Source: Podarcis vaucheri
Taxonomy: Eukaryota
Assembly (NCBI GenBank): GCA_965113315.1
Contig: OZ220364.1
Reading direction: 5' to 3' (one strand)
DNA: 64,000 bases
A program made the translations under genes and the position numbers. Shown piece after piece: positions 2,170 to 48,682 of this stretch; position 1 is the first letter of the stretch, and each line of letters opens with the position of its first letter. The notes under the pieces were generated by a model. The model was not told where the DNA came from. It ran no database searches and worked only from the letters and a program-made list of their open reading frames with translations.

Positions 2170-2484
2170 AGAATCATAGAATCATAGAGTTGGAAGAGAC
2201 CACAAGGGCCATCGAGTCCAACCCCCTGCCAAGCAGGAAACACCTTCAGAGCACTCCTGACATATGGTTGTCAAGCCTCTGCTTAAAGACCTCCAAAGAA
2301 GGAGACTCCACCACACTCCTTGGCAGCAAATTCCACTGTCGAACAGCTCTTACTGTCAGGAAGTTCTTCCTAATGTTTAGGTGGAATCTTCTTTCTTGTA
2401 GTTTGGATCCATTGCTCCGTGTCCGCTTCTCTGGAGCAGCAGAAAACAACCTTTCTCCCTCCTCTATGTGACATCCTTTTATAT
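2170..2484 (-). mobile_element. CR1 LINE 3' fragment (copy A)
   Basis: Minus-strand ORF2 end [25 protein letters not shown]...FLTVRAVRQWNLLPRSVVESPSLEVFKQRLD, plus (ATTCTATG)n tail. Confidence 0.95.
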
Positions 2485-2600
2485 GTCCACAGGTTCAATT
2501 TCCAGGTAAAGGGATCTCAGGTAGCAGGTGATGGAAAAGACCTTCCTCTAGCCAGCGGTCCCAGAGAGTCACTGCCAGTCAAAGCAGACTGTACTATAGG
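2485..2600 (+). mobile_element. 5'-truncated tRNA-derived SINE fragment
   Basis: gtccacaggttcaattt resembles the B-box segment gtcccaggttcaatccc of the fuller SINE at 49640, followed by gagagtcactgccagtc body. Confidence 0.55.
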
Positions 2601-7959: not shown

Positions 7960-8960
7960 TAATGTGAGTGTGAAAAGGCCCTGGCGCGGGCGGGGGAGGG
8001 CGCAGGGGGAGGGGAGGGGACAAGGGGCGGGGCGGGGCCCCTGCGACCCTCCCCCTCGGCCCTGGCTCTTTTCGCGGCCCATTGTTGGCTCCGAGCGGGC
8101 CGGCGGTGCGCGGCGCGGGGGTGTAACCCGAGAGCTTTCGCTACAAAGTCCCCGCGCCTGTTGCTGGAGCCGACAGAAGGCGCGAGGGCTGCAGGCGGAG
8201 AGAGCCGAGCGCGGCCGGGCTGATCGTTCCCACCAAGCCGGCGAAGAACCTTTGTGGAGCCAGCCGCGCTCGGCCGTCGGATTTATTCTTCGGCCACTTT
8301 CCGCGCGACTCGCCGGCACCGGGGAGCGAGCGAGGAAGGGAGGGAGTGGAGGAGCCTCGCTTGCCCAGCCGGCTTGCCCAGCGAGGGATGGAGCCCGGGC
8401 GGAGCGCGCCGCAGCACGGAGCCGCGGGACAGCGCTGAAGCGGCGGCGGCGGCAAGAGGTGAGGTGGGCTCCGTCTACGTTGACCGCTGCGGGGCTAGGA
8501 ATGGCCCCCGGGGAGAGAGATCCGGGTCTCTTGTCCGCCGCGACCCCGGAGGCTCCCCGGGGTGTGGCGGGGCGAAGGGCTGCTCTCCCCGCGCCCGGGG
8601 AGGCGGTGGACTTTGACCGGGAGGGTCTGTAAATCTGTTACCAAACTGTCCGGGCGCGCAGAGGTTCTTTTGTCGCTCGGATTAAAGATTAAGCTGCCCC
8701 CGGGAGCCTGTTCTCGGGCGCTGCTCTCTCCACTCGCACCACGTACGCTCCTTTCCCAGGGAACAGGCGCCCAGATATGCAGGCTGCGCGCAAGACACGA
8801 GTCCATAGGCGCGGCGCACTCACACCGTTCACACCGACACGCGCACCCTGGACGCGCCTGCCCATCCGCGCCAATCCACGGCCGCAAGCGCAGTTGGAAA
8901 TCTTGCGTTAATTGAACGGGGCTTGTGCTCCTAACCGTGCCCTCGAACCTCGTGGCTTTC
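7960..8960 (+). promoter_or_regulatory. CpG island / TATA-less FGFR4 promoter with GC boxes
   Basis: Abrupt CpG- and GC-rich ~1 kb segment. GGGCGG Sp1 boxes at ~7988 and 8025-8036. Lies 1-2 kb upstream of the ATG exon. Confidence 0.85.
8100..8458 (+). other. FGFR4: Putative non-coding exon 1 of FGFR4 (start approximate)
   Basis: Inside the CpG island and downstream of the GC boxes. Ends at donor AAGAG|gtgagg (GT 8459-8460). FGFRs characteristically have an untranslated first exon. Confidence 0.6.
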
Positions 8961-16572: not shown

Positions 16573-16839
16573 AGATGCTTGACAGCCACATGGTGGAGAC
16601 GGAGGAGGAGCACCTGCTACTGGACCCTGGGAGTCTGCTGAAGCTCTACTGCAGCACCAACCACAGCCTTGCGATCATATGGTATAAGGAAGCCAAGCAG
16701 CTTTTCCCAAGCGGGCGCATCCACATGCGGCAGAGCATGCTGGAGATTGTGGAAGCCACCTATGAAGATTCAGGCCTGTACTCCTGCCGAGCGCAGAGCA
16801 CCGGGGAAAGCCTGCGCAACTTCACCATCTCTGTTGTGG
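16573..16839 (+). CDS. FGFR4: FGFR4 exon 3 (Ig-like domain I)
   Basis: EMLDSH...LKLYC...WYKE...EDSGLYSC...RNFTISVV. cag acceptor, G|gtaaga donor, phase 1-1. Confidence 0.95.
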
Positions 16840-22462: not shown

Positions 22463-22601
22463 ACGGCAGATATTAACAGCTCGGAGGTGGAAGTGCTGTA
22501 CCTGCGCAATGTCTCCATGGAAGATGCTGGGGAATATACCTGCCTAGCAGGGAATTCCATTGGCCTGTCATACCAGTCAGCTTGGCTCACTGTGCTTCCA
22601 G
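22463..22601 (+). CDS. FGFR4: FGFR4 exon 8 (Ig-IIIc)
   Basis: [46 protein letters not shown]. Donor G|gtgaga. Confidence 0.98.
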
Positions 22602-23767
22602 GTGAGAAAGGACGGTGGATGAGTGGATGGGGGAAAAGATGGATAATGGTAGTAGGGTATTCCTTTGCAGAGCTAGAAGCAGAGATTACCTTTCCTAATA
22701 GAGACGCTGGGGGTGGGGTGGGACTATACTGTGCATGTCGTACCCCTGTAGAATATCCAATGAGATGAATATGGTAAAGAGAGAGACAGACAGACAGATA
22801 AATGGCTGAAAACAAATTGCAAGACACACTGCCTCGCTTGCATTAAGTTGCCAATCAATCAGTCAACATGACAGATCTATTCACTGTAGAATTATACAGA
22901 ACAATCTACTGTTGTCTTTTGTCAATATATCAATCACAATATGACAGCTGCAGTCCATCAAAAGAGATGCTGCACTTCTCAGTGTATAAATCCTGGAAAG
23001 ACAGACTGGATTTTGGACCCACTTTGTACAAGGAAGAATCCAGCCACTTTTAAATCCCTTGATTTGAATGGAGAATTAGGACAGGCAGGTGAAAAATCAG
23101 ACAGGGCCCTTGCAGCTTGAATAGTTGTGTAGAGCAACACTCCTGCATAGCTATTAAGGATGCAGGTAATATAAATGGGTGGAGACTAGGTGGTTTTTTA
23201 ATATCCACAAATTAGACATAATCCACTGATTAAAAACAAAAAGGCCTACGTACATCTTAAGGGGTGGGGTGGGGAATTGGTAATGAAATGAATTCTGCCT
23301 AGGCTTTGAATGGATAGATTTTGAAAACAGCACATTGTACTGTATATGTAATTAAATGTGGAAGAGATACTGCATGAAATTCCAGGAGCTAGGAAATTTC
23401 TGTTTAGCAAAAACTCTAGGTTTTCACTGAAAGGCATCTGCCTTAAAATGGCTATGTGATGGCTCAATGATAGCTCAAGGATGGGAGCATGATCTAGCCA
23501 GAGTTATCTTTTTACGCCCCATTTATGACAGTCAAAGTGATCTAAACATACGGTATGTTAGGCTCTCTCATTGAAATCAGTGGGATGTATTTTGTTTATG
23601 GTACTGATAGGCTCTGCAGCCAGGTACAGACAGGCTGTTTTTGCAGGCCAATGTACACACCGTGCAGCACAGCCATGTTCCCTCCAGCCCAGCTGGCTAC
23701 CTGCTGTGGTCAAAGCAGGTTTAACCCCCCTGAAACATGCTAACTGCAGATTTATTTGCTATTGCAG

Positions 23768-23961
23768 AAGAAGAAGAAGTGCAAGAGGCAAATGCCCCTG
23801 AAATCAAGTATACCGATATAATTATCTACACTTCGGGATCTTTGGCCATCGCAATGGCTATTGTCATTGTTGTCTTGTGCCGGATGCAGACCCAGCCGAG
23901 CAAGCAGCCCTTGGAGCCCATGGCCGTACACAAACTCTCCAAATTCCCGCTCATTCGGCAG
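23768..23961 (+). CDS. FGFR4: FGFR4 exon 9 (transmembrane helix and juxtamembrane)
   Basis: EEEEVQEANAPEIKYTDIIIYTSGSLAIAMAIVIVVLCRMQ...VHKLSKFPLIRQ. Donor CAG|gtaggt. Confidence 0.97.
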
Positions 23962-24403
23962 GTAGGTACCGAGAGACCCAGAACTAACCTTAAAGTGGGT
24001 CAGAAGGATCCATTGTACCACTGCAGTGGTTTTCAAGGGCCCACAATGTTGTCTGCCTGCTTGGACCAAGAATCAGCAATGGATAAAGTGAGATACTCAG
24101 ATCCTCAGAGTACAACAAATTATTCAGGGTAGTAAAATCCCAGTCGGACCATGCAGATCTCTGAAAACAGCTCTCCCATGTTCAGCTAAATTCACCCTTC
24201 CCTGTTCACTGTCAGGGCAGCATCTGGTTGGCTAGATGGACCTTGTTCGCATTGTTGATGGCTCTTATTGGTGTTAGGTGTGTGTGTTCTGCCCTGTCCC
24301 TTGTTTCACTGTGTCCTTTGTGCCCTTGTCCAGTCCGTTCTTGCGCTGGAGTAAAGCAGTGTCTATGGGGCAATCTGCTTGAATGTTGGGTCTGTCTCCA
24401 CAG

Positions 24404-24713
24404 AATCATAGAATCATAGAGTTGGAAGAGACCACAAGGGCCATCGAGTCCAACCCCCTGCCAAGCGCATCAGAGCACTCCTGACATATGGTTGTCAAGC
24501 CTCTGCTTAAAGACCTCCAAAGTAGGAGACTCCACCACACTCCTTGGCAGGCAGCAAATTCCACTGTCCAACAGCTCTTACTGTCAGGAAGTTCTTCCTA
24601 ATGTTTAGGTGGAATCTTCTTTCTTGTAGTTTGGATCCATTGCTCCGTGTCCGCTTCTCTGGAGCAGCAGAAAACAACCTTTCTCCCTCCTCTATGTGAC
24701 ATCCTTTTATATG
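24404..24713 (-). mobile_element. CR1 LINE 3' fragment (copy B) inserted at the exon-10 splice acceptor
   Basis: Same CR1 ORF2 end and tail as 2170-2484. Flanked by direct repeat TCCACAG (24397-24403 and 24714-24720). Confidence 0.95.
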
Positions 24714-24720
24714 TCCACAG

Positions 24721-24866
24721 TTCTCCTTGGAATCCAGCTCCTCGGGGAAGTCCACCACATCCCTGATGCGTGTCACCCGCCTCTCCTCAAGCTGCACACC
24801 CATGCTGGCCGGGGTCATGGAAGTGGAGCTGCCTCTGGACTCCAAGTGGGAATTCCCACGAGACAG
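24721..24866 (+). CDS. FGFR4: FGFR4 exon 10 (juxtamembrane)
   Basis: [48 protein letters not shown]. Acceptor gtccacag abuts a CR1 insertion. Donor AG|gtaagt. Confidence 0.97.
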
Positions 24867-26076
24867 GTAAGTCTTGTGAGGTGCAACGTAGCTTCCTTCT
24901 GCATGTGCCGCTGAGGATGCTGGCCAGGCTCTCGCATGACTCACACAAGCCCAGTGTCAGAATGGCAAAGCTTCGCCTGCTCACCAAACTTGTATCAAGA
25001 TGTGTGTTTGTTAACACAAAGGGCTAGTTCCCACATGTGGTCCAGCTGCCAGATTGTCAGTGTCCTTAGACCCATGCTTGCCTGTGTTCACGCAGAGGAA
25101 GCAGCTGGTAAGCTGGAAGTTCACGTGTGCCTGGCTGCACAGGACTCTTGTTCCCACCAGCACAGTGGCTCCAAAAATGGCATCACAGCCATCACATACC
25201 ACCTGGTACGCATGTGCTTCAGTTTCACATGTTATTTCCCCCTCACAAGCGAGGGCAAGCACAGCAAGTAGAGTGGCCAAGTACCACAAAGAGGGAAGGC
25301 AGTAGAGTGCATGAGAGTACCGCTTTCTTCAAAGAACAAAACTGGAGAGGAGTCCATTGTAACCCTGCTTAGCTCTGTGACTAAGGGGCTAGCTATAAAA
25401 ATTGTCCGGTATCAAAAGCCGTGCAGTTTGTCTCTTGAATTGCTGCCTGTAGAACAAAGGTGGGGAACCTCAAACTGAGGGGCCAGGTGTGTGTGTACGT
25501 CAGCTATTATACAATGGCAAAATTTACATCCATTGCCTCACTCACTTTTGCACACACATAATTTGATTGTATGCTGCCTTTCCATAGTTCAAACCATGCT
25601 CAAGGCGGCTTACAACACGGAACAAAATACATAACTACAACACAACAAAAGTAGTCATAAACAATAAATTAAACAATAAAAAACTCAAAACCAAACTGAA
25701 CAATTTCCACATAAAACACAACAAAATCTAAAATAAAATACAAAAAACTAATGGCAACAACCATCCTCCCAAACAATACTCCAGGCCAAGAGTCTGTTCA
25801 GCAGCCTGAGCTTTTGTAGCTGGAGTCAGTCCGGGCCCCACCTTCCCAGGTCAGGTGGAAAGGGCAGACAGAGCAGGGAGCAGGTCTTCCAGAACTCAAG
25901 ACAAGATGGACTGTCTCTGGCATATGGCCCTCAGAAGAATGCCTAGAAGGGAATGCTGCCCTTGTGCTGGAAAAGGTTTCCCACTCCAGCTGCTACAGTC
26001 TCTTGGAAATGAACTTGTTAGTGAATTCTTGGAAATGAAAGGAATTTGTTAGTCAATGCACTGTATAGACATTGAT

Positions 26077-26972: not shown

Positions 26973-27200
26973 GTAAGTGACTGCCTCTTTGGGCTGGGAA
27001 GCAGAGGGTACCAGGTGCTGTGAGGAAAGAGGCAGGGATGTTTGGGAGGTCAGGAGAGACCAGAAACTTCGTGGGGCCATTAGGAAGATGCTGCAACTGA
27101 ACAATGGAGCTCTGATGTTCCAGGATAGGAGCAGACATTGTACGGGATTTATGAAGACTGCACCTGAGAGCACAGGCTCACATATAACTCCTGACTGCAG

Positions 27201-27391
27201 GGCCTCTCTATGTGATTGTGGAGTTTGCTGCCAAGGGGAACTTGCGGGAGTACCTGCGCGCCCGTCGCCCTCCCACGCCAGACTACACCTTTGATATCAC
27301 CAAGATGCCTGAGGAGCAGCTGTCCTTCAAAGACTTGGTCTCCTGTGTCTACCAGGTGGCACGTGGCATGGAGTACCTGGAGTCCAAGCGG
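27201..27391 (+). CDS. FGFR4: FGFR4 exon 13 (hinge and kinase insert)
   Basis: [64 protein letters not shown]. Confidence 0.98.
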
Positions 27392-27811
27392 GTAAGAGCA
27401 GCCTGGCCCAAATGGCTTTGCCCCCTCACCAACCCTAGCAGGATCCTTACTTAAGCAGAAATGACTGGTGGCCAATGGGCAAGTGTCATCTGAAGCGTTG
27501 GCAGGTTCTGTTGGAGTGCCAACAGTGAAGGCTCTAAGCCAAGCATTGGCACGCTAAAGCTTTTGCTGGGCTCTTGACTAGCCCGCGAGGGCAGCTACAT
27601 GAGGGTTAGGTCTACCAAAGGAGAGGGGCCGTATGTACCAGGCCTGGGCAGCCATCATGTGATGAAGGAGTGAATGGCAAGGCAGAGAGGCAGCGAAGCT
27701 ACTCCTGACTCTCATGGTAGATGCAGCAACAACCCACTAGCCCAGATGTGTCTTCCATTGGACTGCAGTCTGGGCTGCAGTGGGCTCTCCGGATCCTCAA
27801 GAGAGGATTCA

Positions 27812-27813
<2 letters not shown>

Positions 27814-27862
<49 letters not shown>
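27814..27862 (+). repeat. (TC)~24 microsatellite forming the exon-14 polypyrimidine tract
   Basis: Uninterrupted TC repeat running directly into gcag|TGC. Confidence 0.95.
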
Positions 27863-43850: not shown

Positions 43851-45868
43851 CAGCAAAGGGCTATTTGCAGTTACCTAGCTATACAAATACAATTCACATC
43901 ACACATACTCATCTGGCACCTTTTTGGTTTAACCCTTTCCAGTCCGATTAGCTTCTTCCTACTGTAATGGCTCTTTCCTGATTTTAAATTGACCCCATTC
44001 ATTCTGACGGTCTTTTTAAATTGAGGGTGTGCAGCCAGTTCTGACACCATACCGCATGATCAGGAGCCATTTTAGAGGAGGTACAAAATTATTCCTCAAC
44101 ACAGAAAAATGCCACCACTGTTGACGATTTATTTAGTAGGTCTTCGCTTTGGCTATTTCTGGAGGCCTGGAAGCTAGGAAAATAAAACTGGGGAAGGTGA
44201 GAAATGCATTGGGGTTTTGTGGCATGACATTAGGCTTTGCGTCCACATTAGCAGCTCTTTCCCTTACAAGCCTCTCTTCTACAACTTGACTGGTGCATTG
44301 GTCACCAGGAAAATGTTACTAATGTCAATATAGTAATAAAATTGAATTCTGCTTGCAAAATCTAGTTGTGCCTATAGGCTAGGCCAGTCTTTTAAAGACG
44401 CAGACCAGTCGTCCTGGCCCAAGAAGACATCAGCTCCAGAACCATCTTTGGATATGGTGCCCTCCCCTGAAATTGACCATTTCTGTCCTGTCCATGAAAC
44501 TCTCTGGCAACCCTTGCTTTGAACCAGCTTCTTTGAGGGCAGGTGCCATTATGGCCTCTCTAGCTGGTACAGGTCAATAGGACCACCAACGTGGTCTCTG
44601 ACTCCCATCAGCCTCAGCCAAATAGCCAGTGGTGAGGAACGATGGAAGGTGGATTCACCTGGAGGGCAGCATGTTGGTGGAGGCTGATCTGGTCCAGTTT
44701 GATTCTAAGGTAGCAGGCAACCTGTCTTTTGCTTGTGCTTTTCATGTTCTACCCCGCTGTGATGGAGAGGACATAAAAAGGGAGCTCCTGCGCCAGTGGT
44801 ATCCTGGGCTTCCTTTGCCTTCCCTGGATCTATAGCATCTACTCCATCAGCACCCCATTTTTCTGCAGTGCAAGTGATGTTCCTGTGAGCCTGCCAGCCG
44901 GCACTATTGCCCTCGCTTAGCTCCGGTAGTGTTTTCACATGTCTCGTTGCTGAAATATATCCCTGCCGTCATCTCAGATGGCTTTCTTGCAATTAGCCTG
45001 TTTGTACAAAGTTTCAGGACGACCCCGCTCACCATTTGATTCCTCCTTTTATAAGGTGCCAGCGGTGCCTCAGGCACAACCACAGCTGCTGGCCTCTGAA
45101 GAAAGCACACAGCTCTTCTTCAGCAGATGGGAGCCAAGAGTTAAGACGAGAGATGCCCAATCAGACTTTGGGAGCCACAATGCGGCTGTGAATGACAGGC
45201 AGCAAACACCAGGCAGCCACCTTCTCCCGCACCTTGCGCTCTAACTTTGTGCAAAAAAACAACTTTCTCCTAAAGCGTCTGCCCTCCACCTGCCATGCCT
45301 GTGTCCTTCACCTCTTGGCACAGCTTCAGTAGGTGCCTTGTGCTGGATACTCGGGCAGTAAACCGAAAGGAACGTCTGCATCTGTTGGAGGGGAATTAAG
45401 CTGAATCCCAAGGAATCTGTGTTGCAAGGATGCATTGGGAGTAGTGGGGGGTGGGGAGGATGCAGTTGTGTTGCTCTCTTTGGGAATGGGGCGGGGGAGG
45501 GTGAAACAGGGCCATTAATCTGAGGAAATATTTCTTTATTTTCCCAGTGCAGAAATTTGAACTCGGGCAGCACCTGGGACAACAGGCTGTTGATTGCTTC
45601 AGCTATGCCTCTGGCACACACCCCCTCCTTTTTGGCAAAAAGAGCCGTTAGTTAATCCTGCTCCAGTGCCCAACAGGGAGGAGAGAGAGTGGCTATTAAA
45701 TAATTAAATCCTGAAACCCGAGTGAGGGCTTGCTGACCTCTCTTGGGCAGGTAACCCCAGCCCAATTCCCAGGACTCACCCCCCAGTCAAAACACAGCAA
45801 TTTCTGACACTTTTGTTTTCATAGCTGGAGGGGCGACTGTGCCTACACCAAGCAGAAGGACCTCTCTT

Positions 45869-45899
<31 letters not shown>

Positions 45900-48682
45900 G
45901 CTCCTTTCAATAGGTTCTCAAGGCTCTTTCAGTGGCCAGCGGCTAAAGTGGCCTGCAGAGGATTTATGACCACAGAAAACCAAGAACTTAAGAAGAACAT
46001 CAGCTAGGTAGCCAATATGCGACTCTTCAGCTGTTGGGGAACTCCAGCTCCCATCAGCCTTAGTTAGCATGGCCAGTGGTCAGGGATTATGGGAGTTGTA
46101 GTCCACCAACATCTGGCTGCCCCTATGCTAGAGGGACGCCATCAACTCCTTTAATTGCACAAGCTGGCTTTTCTGGTATTTTGTTGAATCCCACCTGAAA
46201 ATAGTGCCCAAATGGCTCCTGGTTTTAACAGTTCTCCAAAATCCTCCGAAATTTTAAAAATCGCAATAAATAATAATTTCAAAGACATTTTATTTGCCAA
46301 AATAATATAGATAAAACACAAGGAACTGTAGGGATAAACCCCAGGGAGACAGTGGGGAGTTAAGAGGGTTGGGAAGCATACAGAAGTGCCAGCATAAAAA
46401 TATACATCAACTGAGTCTGGACTATCCCAAACAAGGTCCATTGTCCCATCAGATCCAGCCCCTTTTAACTGTAACAAACAGTTAGAAGAATAAGGCATGC
46501 AGCTTAAGCAGCGGACTGAATCTGCTCACTTTGCCTCACCAACAAGTTAAAAAGTAACAAATTGCCAGGGTTGGGTGGTGACTTTGACTCAAAGCATTCA
46601 CATCTGTGTGTGTGTGCTTATAAACATATTGCTTACCAGAGAACAGGAATAGCAGATAATGCAATATATTGCTTTTTTAAAAAATGATTGAGACCACAGA
46701 CCTCTATGCTTAACTTCTCAGATCAGTTGGTTAAAATGGCTGACGTTTTAATGTCCAGGTACATGTGGGCAACACACTATGATGTGACCTACCCCACAAT
46801 ACAGGCAAGAGTGAAGCCCACCACAGAATGGTAGGGAAAACAAGGAGGGTCAAGCTGAATGAGGAGTCAGTGGGAAAGCAGGAACCATGGAATTGGGGGA
46901 TAGGGGACAGTTCCTCCCCAACCCTGTTTGTCCACCCCAGGAGAAAGGGAGAAGGGTCCCTCTGGTGGCACAAAGCAATTAAGAACATCAGAAGAGCCCT
47001 GCAGGGTCAGGTCAAAGGCCCATACAGTCCTGCATCCTGTTCCCACAGCAGCCAACCAACTGGAGCAAAGTCCTCCTTTTGAGTCATGGTAGCAATAGGC
47101 TTCCCCAAAAGTGAGGCAAAACTTGGTTGGGGAAATCAGACAAAAAAGGCAGAGAGAGGCCTGGACTTAGTCACTCACCTCATCCCATCCCATGGCTAGA
47201 AAAGGAGCTTGGATTCTCAGAAGAGAAGGAAGAAGGGTGGCAAAAGGACTGGCTTCCTTCCAGCTGAGTGGTTTGAGGCTGCACCCCACCCTATAGAAAG
47301 AAATAAAAAAGAAGGCTTGCTGAGGAGGGATTAGTGGATCCTCTGCAAATAATTAGATACCACTTTTAAATAAAGTTGGCATCTGTCTGTCTCAGACACC
47401 CCCTTTTGGGGTGAAGTCCAACTGCTGAAGAGTCCAACCGCTGAAGAGTTACAGCGCCAGCTGTGGCTGTAGAGTCCGATATGGGAGGGACATGTTTTGT
47501 TGCAGCTGGGGCAGATGAGGACATCCAGTTGTGCTGCTGCAACTCTGTGTTACAGTCATTTCTCCTCTGGTCACTGCTGTGGATGCACAACCTGACTGCC
47601 CGTCTCCAGGCACTGCGGTTGCCATTGAAAAAGAAGTGATGGCTTCTTGAGACGAATCCAGGTTCACAATATTGGGATCACAGCTGCCAGGTCTGCTTCA
47701 GTGACAATTCCTCACTGTGCCTTGATAAGGGAGATGTTTAGAGCTGCCCTTTGTCATCCAGGGCAGCATAGCAAAGCGGCCCTTCCTTTCACTGAGCTTG
47801 GTGCTTCATGTTGCCCTGGGGGCCTCAGAGCTGTGGTTTTGGCATATGAATAAACCTCCCCTCCCACCCCCACCACATAATGAGCCGCCAGAATGGCCCA
47901 TCAATCAGCCACGATCAGGGAGCATAAAAAGGCATCCTTTCCTCAAGGACCATTGCTGATGGTCAATTTTTGCAAGGTCTGCTGTTGCTATAAAGCCCAG
48001 GGGCAGTTTATACTCCCCACAACAGTTTATTGTATGTCCTTCTCCATTTCCACCTCTGATTTTGGACTCAGAAGTAGAATTGAGTAGATCACCTTATAAA
48101 TGCTCAGAAATACTCTTTCAGGCATTAGCCCTAGGCATTTCCTCACCTGGAGTGAAAAGTGGAAATGACTCCCCTCTCCTCCTCATGTTTTAAATGACAC
48201 ACTGGTCATGGGGCTGAGGTTGAAAGCTGGAAAATAGCACCCCTTGTGGACCATGCTGCAGATTCACATTACTTTTTGCTAGCAGGAGGTCCTGGCCCGT
48301 TCTCACTTTTACTAAGGGAAGGCAGGCAGATCTCTTTCTCCTTCTTGCTCATCAGGGCCAGTCCTTCCATTGGCCAAAGTGAGGAGGCTGCCTCAAGCAG
48401 CAGATGCTGTGAGGCAAAGGCAAAGCTGTGTGTGCCTTGAACTGTCTAAGCTGCCCTCAGGTCCTATGGAGGACATTGTCCCTTTAGATTCAGCTGCCAG
48501 TTGATTCATCTAGACAGGTGCCACCTTGTCCTTTGCTTCAGGCAGCCAAATGTATTGTACCAGCCCTGTTGTACATGGTGCCCATCCCTCAGAGATCAGG
48601 GGTCTCACAAATCTTGACACTCAGAATAAAGGCAGAACTCTTTAAGAAAAAAACCTTTCTAAATGATTGATTCCCTTGGTCC

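Follow-up and report, generated by a model that had tools for sequence, protein, structure and literature searches.

FGFR4 in the window

The analyzed window, a stretch of 64,000 nt from Podarcis vaucheri contig OZ220364.1 (assembly GCA_965113315.1), carries an FGFR4 gene on the + strand. A tblastn search with the turtle FGFR4 protein detected 16 coding exons between positions 16575 and 29923 without internal stops, which were examined individually rather than as a joined coding sequence. Between the IIIa and the transmembrane exons lies a single exon of the GEYTC/AGNS (IIIc) type (22463-22600), which is identical to human FGFR4 at 45 of 46 positions and scores 97 bits against it, compared with 75 bits against FGFR2, placing FGFR4 well above FGFR1-3. 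The named relatives of the transmembrane-juxtamembrane region are all FGFR4. A PDB search with exon 10 ranked FGFR2 first, but solely because FGFR4 kinase chains were matched only from about residue 24 of the exon; the paralogue was settled by the match of the IIIc exon and not by this ranking. The members listed for the Gekko FGFR4 protein cluster are birds and geckos, with no lacertid among them.

Exon 9, coding for the transmembrane segment (23768-23961, + strand), ends with ...CGG CAG in phase 0 and is followed by a donor GT at 23962-23963. The juxtamembrane exon 10 (24721-24866, + strand, 146 nt) starts with FSLES... and ends with ...WEFPRD, and full-length FGFR4 proteins read ..KFPLIRQ/FSLDSS.. 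across this boundary. Intron 9 (23962-24720, + strand) has a length of 759 nt in the window and of 442 nt in two related species that lack the insert described below.

For comparison, four runs were aligned to positions 23650-24950 of the window, two of DNA (X3 from organism B, X9 from organism F) and two of RNA (X19 and X23). An RNA contig of X19 (organism F; 1902 nt, depth 100.6) covers exon 9 at 23765-23958(+3) and then joins exon 10, skipping 759 nt of the window, which gives a junction 23961/24721 with GT..AG ends. The exon boundaries are thereby confirmed; organism F is insert-free, so that this junction is silent on how the filled allele is spliced. In the raw RNA run X23 of the same organism (about 1.9 billion letters), FGFR4 is hardly covered. 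Differences between the window and its relatives within exons 9 and 10 were found at 23850, 23889, 24762 and 24810, all of them synonymous third-position changes, which fits a constrained gene, while constraint after the insertion is not dated by them.

Several further features of the gene and its surroundings were recorded. The kinase hinge exon (27200-27391) reads VEFAAKGNL with a Phe, as does the turtle orthologue P0072 (VEFASKGNL), at the position of the distinctive Cys of human FGFR4. A GC-rich, CpG-island-like stretch (7960-8700) containing long open frames on each strand probably represents the FGFR4 promoter together with the 5' UTR; it precedes the first mapped coding exon by about 8 kb. 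The occurrence of bird FGFR4 gene models with fused zinc-finger domains (PF12171, PF12874) suggests a ZNF346-like gene upstream of FGFR4. CT/GA dinucleotide microsatellites, visible as SLSLSL.. in the translations, occur at about 27780-27830 and 45850-45900, one of them in an FGFR4 intron.

A CR1 fragment at the intron 9/exon 10 boundary

Two copies of the 7-mer TCCACAG, both on the + strand, flank an insert at the end of intron 9, exactly where the earlier note had placed them. The right copy (24714-24720) abuts the first codons of exon 10, TTC TCC TTG, and provides the in-frame acceptor AG at 24719-24720. The left copy (24397-24403) holds an orphan acceptor AG (24402-24403), which keeps its full ancestral upstream context (24360-24396, + strand): an AG-free stretch from 24360 on, a branch-like cttgAa (A24382) and a weak, G-rich pyrimidine tract, all of them now separated from exon 10. 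Across the window the motif itself is unremarkable, with 18 matches where 13.6 are expected and 17 of 100 shuffles reaching 18; the pair is meaningful through its position around the insert.

The 310 nt between the two copies (24404-24713) are the 5'-truncated 3' end of a CR1 LINE on the - strand, antisense to FGFR4. The assignment of the insert to antisense CR1, already made in the earlier note, is borne out by the octamer tail, the ORF2 C-terminus and the word depth. In detail, the fragment consists of the 3' UTR (24404-24469), the ORF2 stop (24470-24472, TCA on the + strand) and ORF2 C-terminal codons (24473-24713), all on the - strand; compared with the family consensus, it lacks 8 nt after 24466 and has 4 extra nt near 24546. 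CR1 elements end in an octamer microsatellite, 5'-ATTCTRTG-3' (PMC8665684), next to a hairpin (PMC8665684, PMC4316615). Here, the octamer tail (24402-24420, - strand) comprises 2.4 perfect units of ATTCTATG in element sense, which corresponds to its reverse complement AGAATCAT on the + strand, and the target CACAG together with the AAT of the element reads as a further octamer unit, ATTCTGTG. A 3' UTR hairpin with a 9-bp outer stem is predicted directly upstream of the octamers in element sense (24418-24457, - strand); its folding energy of -19.8 kcal/mol is no better than that of shuffles (z-score -1.1).

The C-terminal ORF2 peptide encoded on the - strand has 61 relatives at E <= 1e-5, including CR1-type ORF fragments of Podarcis lilfordi with 96-98% identity and bird entries named 'RNA-directed DNA polymerase'. 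The fragment comprises the last ~80 codons and the 3' UTR and has neither endonuclease nor reverse transcriptase domain; it is a dead copy like most CR1 copies, and the missing domains are no argument against the family. The summed contig word depth reaches about 1e6 over 24398-24705, compared with 13-36 on the flanks, in two species. Within the window, we found only two close CR1 copies, plus older fragments. In the RNA run X23 of organism F, positions 24398-24712 are covered by several hundred reads per position on both strands, and together with a highly consistent continuation of the reads into ORF2 (agreement 0.95) this indicates a high abundance of the CR1 family in RNA, whether transcribed on its own or as part of other transcripts.

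The outer end of the element was defined by the same continuation. Ordinary CR1 copies leave the window sequence after 24712 and go on as ATTTGAACATGGCTATCATATCACC, as observed for 590 RNA reads at the agreement given above and for 17+17 contigs of the two DNA runs. In element sense, the family continues as ..GDMIAMFKY/IKGCH.., matching the protein relatives, which read ..MFKYIKGCH.. where the FGFR4 copy reads ..CGHIKGCH... At the junction between the element and the duplication stands a non-consensus G (24713, + strand), where the family consensus has an A followed by TTTGAACATGG. CR1 homology thus ends at 24712-24714, and TCCACAG does not belong to the CR1 consensus.

Related species carry the empty site

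The insert is absent from related species. A single DNA contig of organism B (X3; 3068 nt, depth 35.8) runs from 23653 to 24396 and then from 24714 to 24950 without interruption, and DNA of organism F (X9) has the identical joint. Exactly 317 nt of the window (24397-24713) are skipped, with 7 letters that fit on either side. The empty sites read ...gtctgtcTCCACAG (likewise given as ...tctgtcTCCACAG) followed directly by TTCTCC, in line with the prediction of the earlier note that empty alleles should have ...tctgtctccacag in front of TTCTCC. The ancestral acceptor context is found in both contigs up to the joint rather than being replaced by an unrelated one, and in the flanking intron organisms B and F differ from the window by about 1.5%. 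A third insert-free lineage is represented by P0062, a Logan-derived ORF from a more distant lizard, whose exon 10 is 100% identical to that of the window; the frame of P0062 continues through an intron end that is close to the empty site in length, with an MDLV.. start 53 codons upstream compared with 56 in the window, and has no CR1.

The proposal that a CR1 insertion hit the acceptor itself is thus fully borne out by an AG left on each side of the insert and by empty orthologous sites in two species. Three lineages, one of them more divergent, are insert-free, and the CR1 insertion, with its 7-bp target-site duplication, is therefore derived in the lineage of the window. The opposite polarity, an ancestral CR1 that was precisely deleted in the relatives, or an artefact of the assembly, is very improbable. 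It is true that the filled state was seen in the assembly only. However, all three of these lineages are insert-free, the precise loss of a retroelement along with one copy of its duplication is rare, and misassembly would not account for a clean 7-bp duplication flanking an element whose start coincides with its octamer tail. In addition, only a few sites distinguish the FGFR4 copy from the family consensus, which fits a young insertion.

A second copy of the fragment and the origin of the proximal TCCACAG

About 22 kb upstream of the FGFR4 copy, the same CR1 fragment occurs once more in the window (2170-2492, - strand), in unrelated flanks. The two copies are 95% identical including gaps, with 4 substitutions and 2 indels, and the upstream copy is closer to the consensus, its ORF2 C-terminus reading unbroken to the stop. 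It shares with the FGFR4 copy the end that is not CR1, G+TCCACAG. A segmental duplication of the two loci was rejected, the similarity of the flanks being no greater than that of shuffles, and so was an independent origin of the shared end, which needs the same truncation point and eight identical non-consensus bases. To the right of the upstream copy, GTTCAATTTCCAG followed by GTAAAG resembles a 13-nt mini-exon with a donor, which is probably due to chance.

This shared end bears on the question of where the in-frame AG comes from. Both copies might stem from a master RNA that started with CTGTGGAC and continued into the CR1 3' end; the 5' end of this master would have paired with the 7-nt target overhang through microhomology, or matched it by chance, the duplication would be only apparent and the in-frame AG would have been supplied by the retroelement. 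We regard such an element-borne TCCACAG as possible, at clearly less than even odds. It accounts directly for the same non-consensus G+TCCACAG in unrelated flanks, two copies within 64 kb are easier to obtain from a short multi-copy family than from a parent and a daughter 22 kb apart, and the target CACAG resembles the complement of the CR1 tail, so that part of the match is non-random. On the other hand, we saw no further copy with a G+TCCACAG end; reads and contigs of organisms B and F overwhelmingly depart at 24712, with none departing at 24720 among the classes listed; and CGHIKGCH occurs in none of the protein relatives retrieved. A CR1 preceded by TCCACAG is most simply derived from the FGFR4 insertion with its duplication, which would make the upstream copy its daughter.

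Descent of the upstream copy from the FGFR4 copy and descent of both from a common master stand at roughly even odds. As a daughter, it may have carried the duplicated acceptor along as a short (8-nt) 5' transduction, which requires a 5' end exactly at the outer edge of the duplication and a landing 22 kb from the parent. Either origin of the second copy leaves the final sequence at FGFR4 and the question of its splicing unchanged. The CR1 codons ..CAT ATA AAA GGA.. (24702-24712, - strand) form a TATA-box-like CATATAAAAGG; a start directed by it would fall inside CR1 and gives no account of the 5' end of the second copy.

Splice signals and competing acceptors

The acceptors were described by AG-free zones, pyrimidine counts and branch-like As rather than by a quantitative splice-site score. 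From position -8 to -317, the in-frame acceptor is preceded by CR1 sequence. Upstream of the proximal AG (24720), 48 nt are free of AG (24671-24718); this zone is wholly inside CR1 and includes a CR1-borne run of 16 pyrimidines (24678-24693, + strand), the reverse complement of ORF2 codons. A candidate branch-like A (tgtgAc, A24699, + strand), likewise CR1-borne, lies 21 nt upstream of G24720, with a T at -2 and a C at +1. Zone, branch-like motif and pyrimidine tract are all present as they had been described before. At positions -20 to -3, the proximal AG has 13 of 18 pyrimidines and the ancestral context 12 of 18.

Two other AGs could compete with it, and both would break the reading frame. 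The orphan AG 24403 has kept all ancestral intronic signals, with the branch-like A24382 at -21 and a 42-nt AG-free zone; its use would add 317 nt and lead to a stop after 26 codons. Inside CR1, a cryptic acceptor (cttctttcttgtAG, AG at 24628-24629, + strand) follows a run of 11 pyrimidines and would add 91 nt with a frameshift. Roughly 25 AGs separate the ancestral branch region from the proximal AG, so that, by the established AG-exclusion-zone rule, the proximal AG could be used only with a branch point inside CR1. A further observation concerns the CR1 body: the orphan acceptor 24403 and a donor-like AG/GTGGAA (24608/24609) could define a CR1 cassette exon of 205 nt (24404-24608), which contains the in-frame stop of the readthrough from the orphan acceptor.

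If the ancestral branch point were still in use together with 24403, or if 24629 were used, most transcripts would contain CR1 sequence, and the premature stop or the frameshift would make the insertion a loss-of-function, hypomorphic or poison-isoform allele, resulting in nonsense-mediated decay or a kinase-less receptor. The intact orphan acceptor with its AG-free zone and branch-like A speaks for this outcome, as does AG 24629, whose pyrimidine run is in our comparison stronger than the proximal tract. Fgfr4-null mice are reportedly viable, so that such an allele could persist. Yet the local context of the proximal AG is at least equal, given its pyrimidine count, its longer run and its longer AG-free zone, and its spacing to the exon 10 donor is the normal one, by which it would be favoured under exon definition. 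Nor is there decay elsewhere in the gene, although the insertion is too young for this to carry much weight. Altogether, a hypomorphic or poison-isoform allele is plausible but appears less likely to us than use of the proximal AG.

The proximal AG, in turn, is probably the main acceptor in carriers, judging from these sequence features, and we hold this with moderate confidence. A dependence of correct splicing on the CR1-borne branch point and pyrimidine tract, as proposed in the earlier note, would follow only if carriers continue to produce normal FGFR4 mRNA. The earlier note had called the junction essential, which stands for the transcript encoding the kinase and is overstated for the animal, in view of the viability said to hold for mice without Fgfr4.

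A model for the insertion

An element that starts at its tail, a truncated 5' end and a 7-bp duplication are marks of target-primed reverse transcription. We therefore propose that, in the lineage leading to the species of the window, this process placed a 5'-truncated antisense copy of CR1 precisely where intron 9 meets exon 10. In this model, the + strand would have been nicked between the G of the acceptor and the first base of the exon, and the target ...CACAG would have paired with the octamer tail of the CR1 RNA (ATTCTRTG), priming reverse transcription. The resulting duplication of TCCACAG would have left one AG 317 nt upstream, together with the ancestral branch point and pyrimidine tract, and a second AG touching exon 10. 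Given normal FGFR4 mRNA, branch point and tract would now lie within CR1, inside or just upstream of 24671-24718, with A24699 and the pyrimidine run 24678-24693 as the likely signals.

By its sequence, a yCACAG acceptor looks like a natural priming site for antisense CR1, and the locus raises the question of CR1 target choice at sequences resembling its own tail. A more far-reaching version states that acceptors ending in yCACAG mimic the complement of the octamer tail (ATTCTGTG) and are preferred sites for antisense CR1, that such insertions are survivable and that the FGFR4 copy is the parent of the copy at 2170-2492. Survival could be explained by the duplication restoring the AG and by the reversed ORF2 C-terminus being a good tract and branch site. 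In this extended form, we consider the proposal doubtful. If it were true, the intronic half of a constitutive acceptor would have been swapped in a lineage-specific manner in a conserved receptor kinase gene.

Discussion

Taken together, a CR1 element was inserted into the FGFR4 acceptor of this lineage, and the proximal AG probably serves as the main acceptor in carriers; for this explanation as a whole we estimate a probability of roughly 0.68. The structural side of this explanation is strongly supported, with the filled state of the species read from its assembly; the use of the proximal AG is inferred.

The locus is informative for either outcome of splicing. If carriers splice normally, it represents a natural experiment in which branch point and pyrimidine tract were replaced in one step by reversed LINE coding sequence, and filled and empty alleles can be compared across sister species. 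If carriers missplice, the reference genome contains a natural FGFR4 hypomorph or poison isoform, which would be relevant to users of the species' annotation and to studies of FGF19/FGFR4 signalling in lizards. However carriers splice, the insertion is a well-defined presence/absence marker for the clade. In the scoring of retroposon presence and absence, target-site duplications are an optional feature, considered 'if present' (PMC4316615), whereas the CR1 in FGFR4 has a clean 7-bp duplication.

As summarized in PMC6007223, the overlap between LINE tails and their targets is explained by base pairs between the LINE RNA and the cleaved strand (Ichiyanagi and Okada 2008). The FGFR4 insertion shares with CR1 integration the 5' truncation, the octamers at the junction and an overlap of tail and target, which amounts to AG, or to CACAG if ATTCTGTG is counted. 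In the exonization of antisense Alu and LINE copies, the retroelement provides the pyrimidine tract, the branch point and the AG of 3' splice sites, and the classic cases create new, mostly alternative exons. In contrast, the CR1 in FGFR4 would substitute for the intronic half of an acceptor that already serves a constitutive coding exon.

Intronic SINEs near an acceptor can cause exon skipping, for example in FAM161A of dogs (PMC3976383). Such cases have in common with FGFR4 a young retroelement that lies at most tens of bases from a constitutive 3' splice site, with the branch point or pyrimidine tract displaced. They are disease alleles with demonstrated mis-splicing, whereas the FGFR4 insertion, described at the level of sequence, lies at position 0 of the acceptor. 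A SINE insertion in canine HCRTR2 is said to be a similar near-acceptor case, and Alu insertions near the IIIc exon of FGFR2 have reportedly been found in Apert syndrome.

The closest documented case is canine merle, in which an antisense SINEC_Cf is located at the intron 10/exon 11 boundary of PMEL (SILV) and brings along a pyrimidine tract and an alternative acceptor, so that competing AGs decide on the formation of normal protein (PMC6091007, PMC7349775). Both loci have an antisense retroelement right at an intron-exon boundary. In merle, however, splicing is tuned by the length of the SINE oligo(dT), whereas the CR1 fragment is the 3' end of a LINE without a homopolymer, and ORF2 codons in reverse reading form its pyrimidine tract. 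The position of the competing ancestral AG is another difference, upstream in FGFR4 and at the exon in merle. Finally, merle is documented by transcripts and phenotype, while the FGFR4 insertion is known from sequence, namely from the reference genome of a wild species with empty sites in its sister species.
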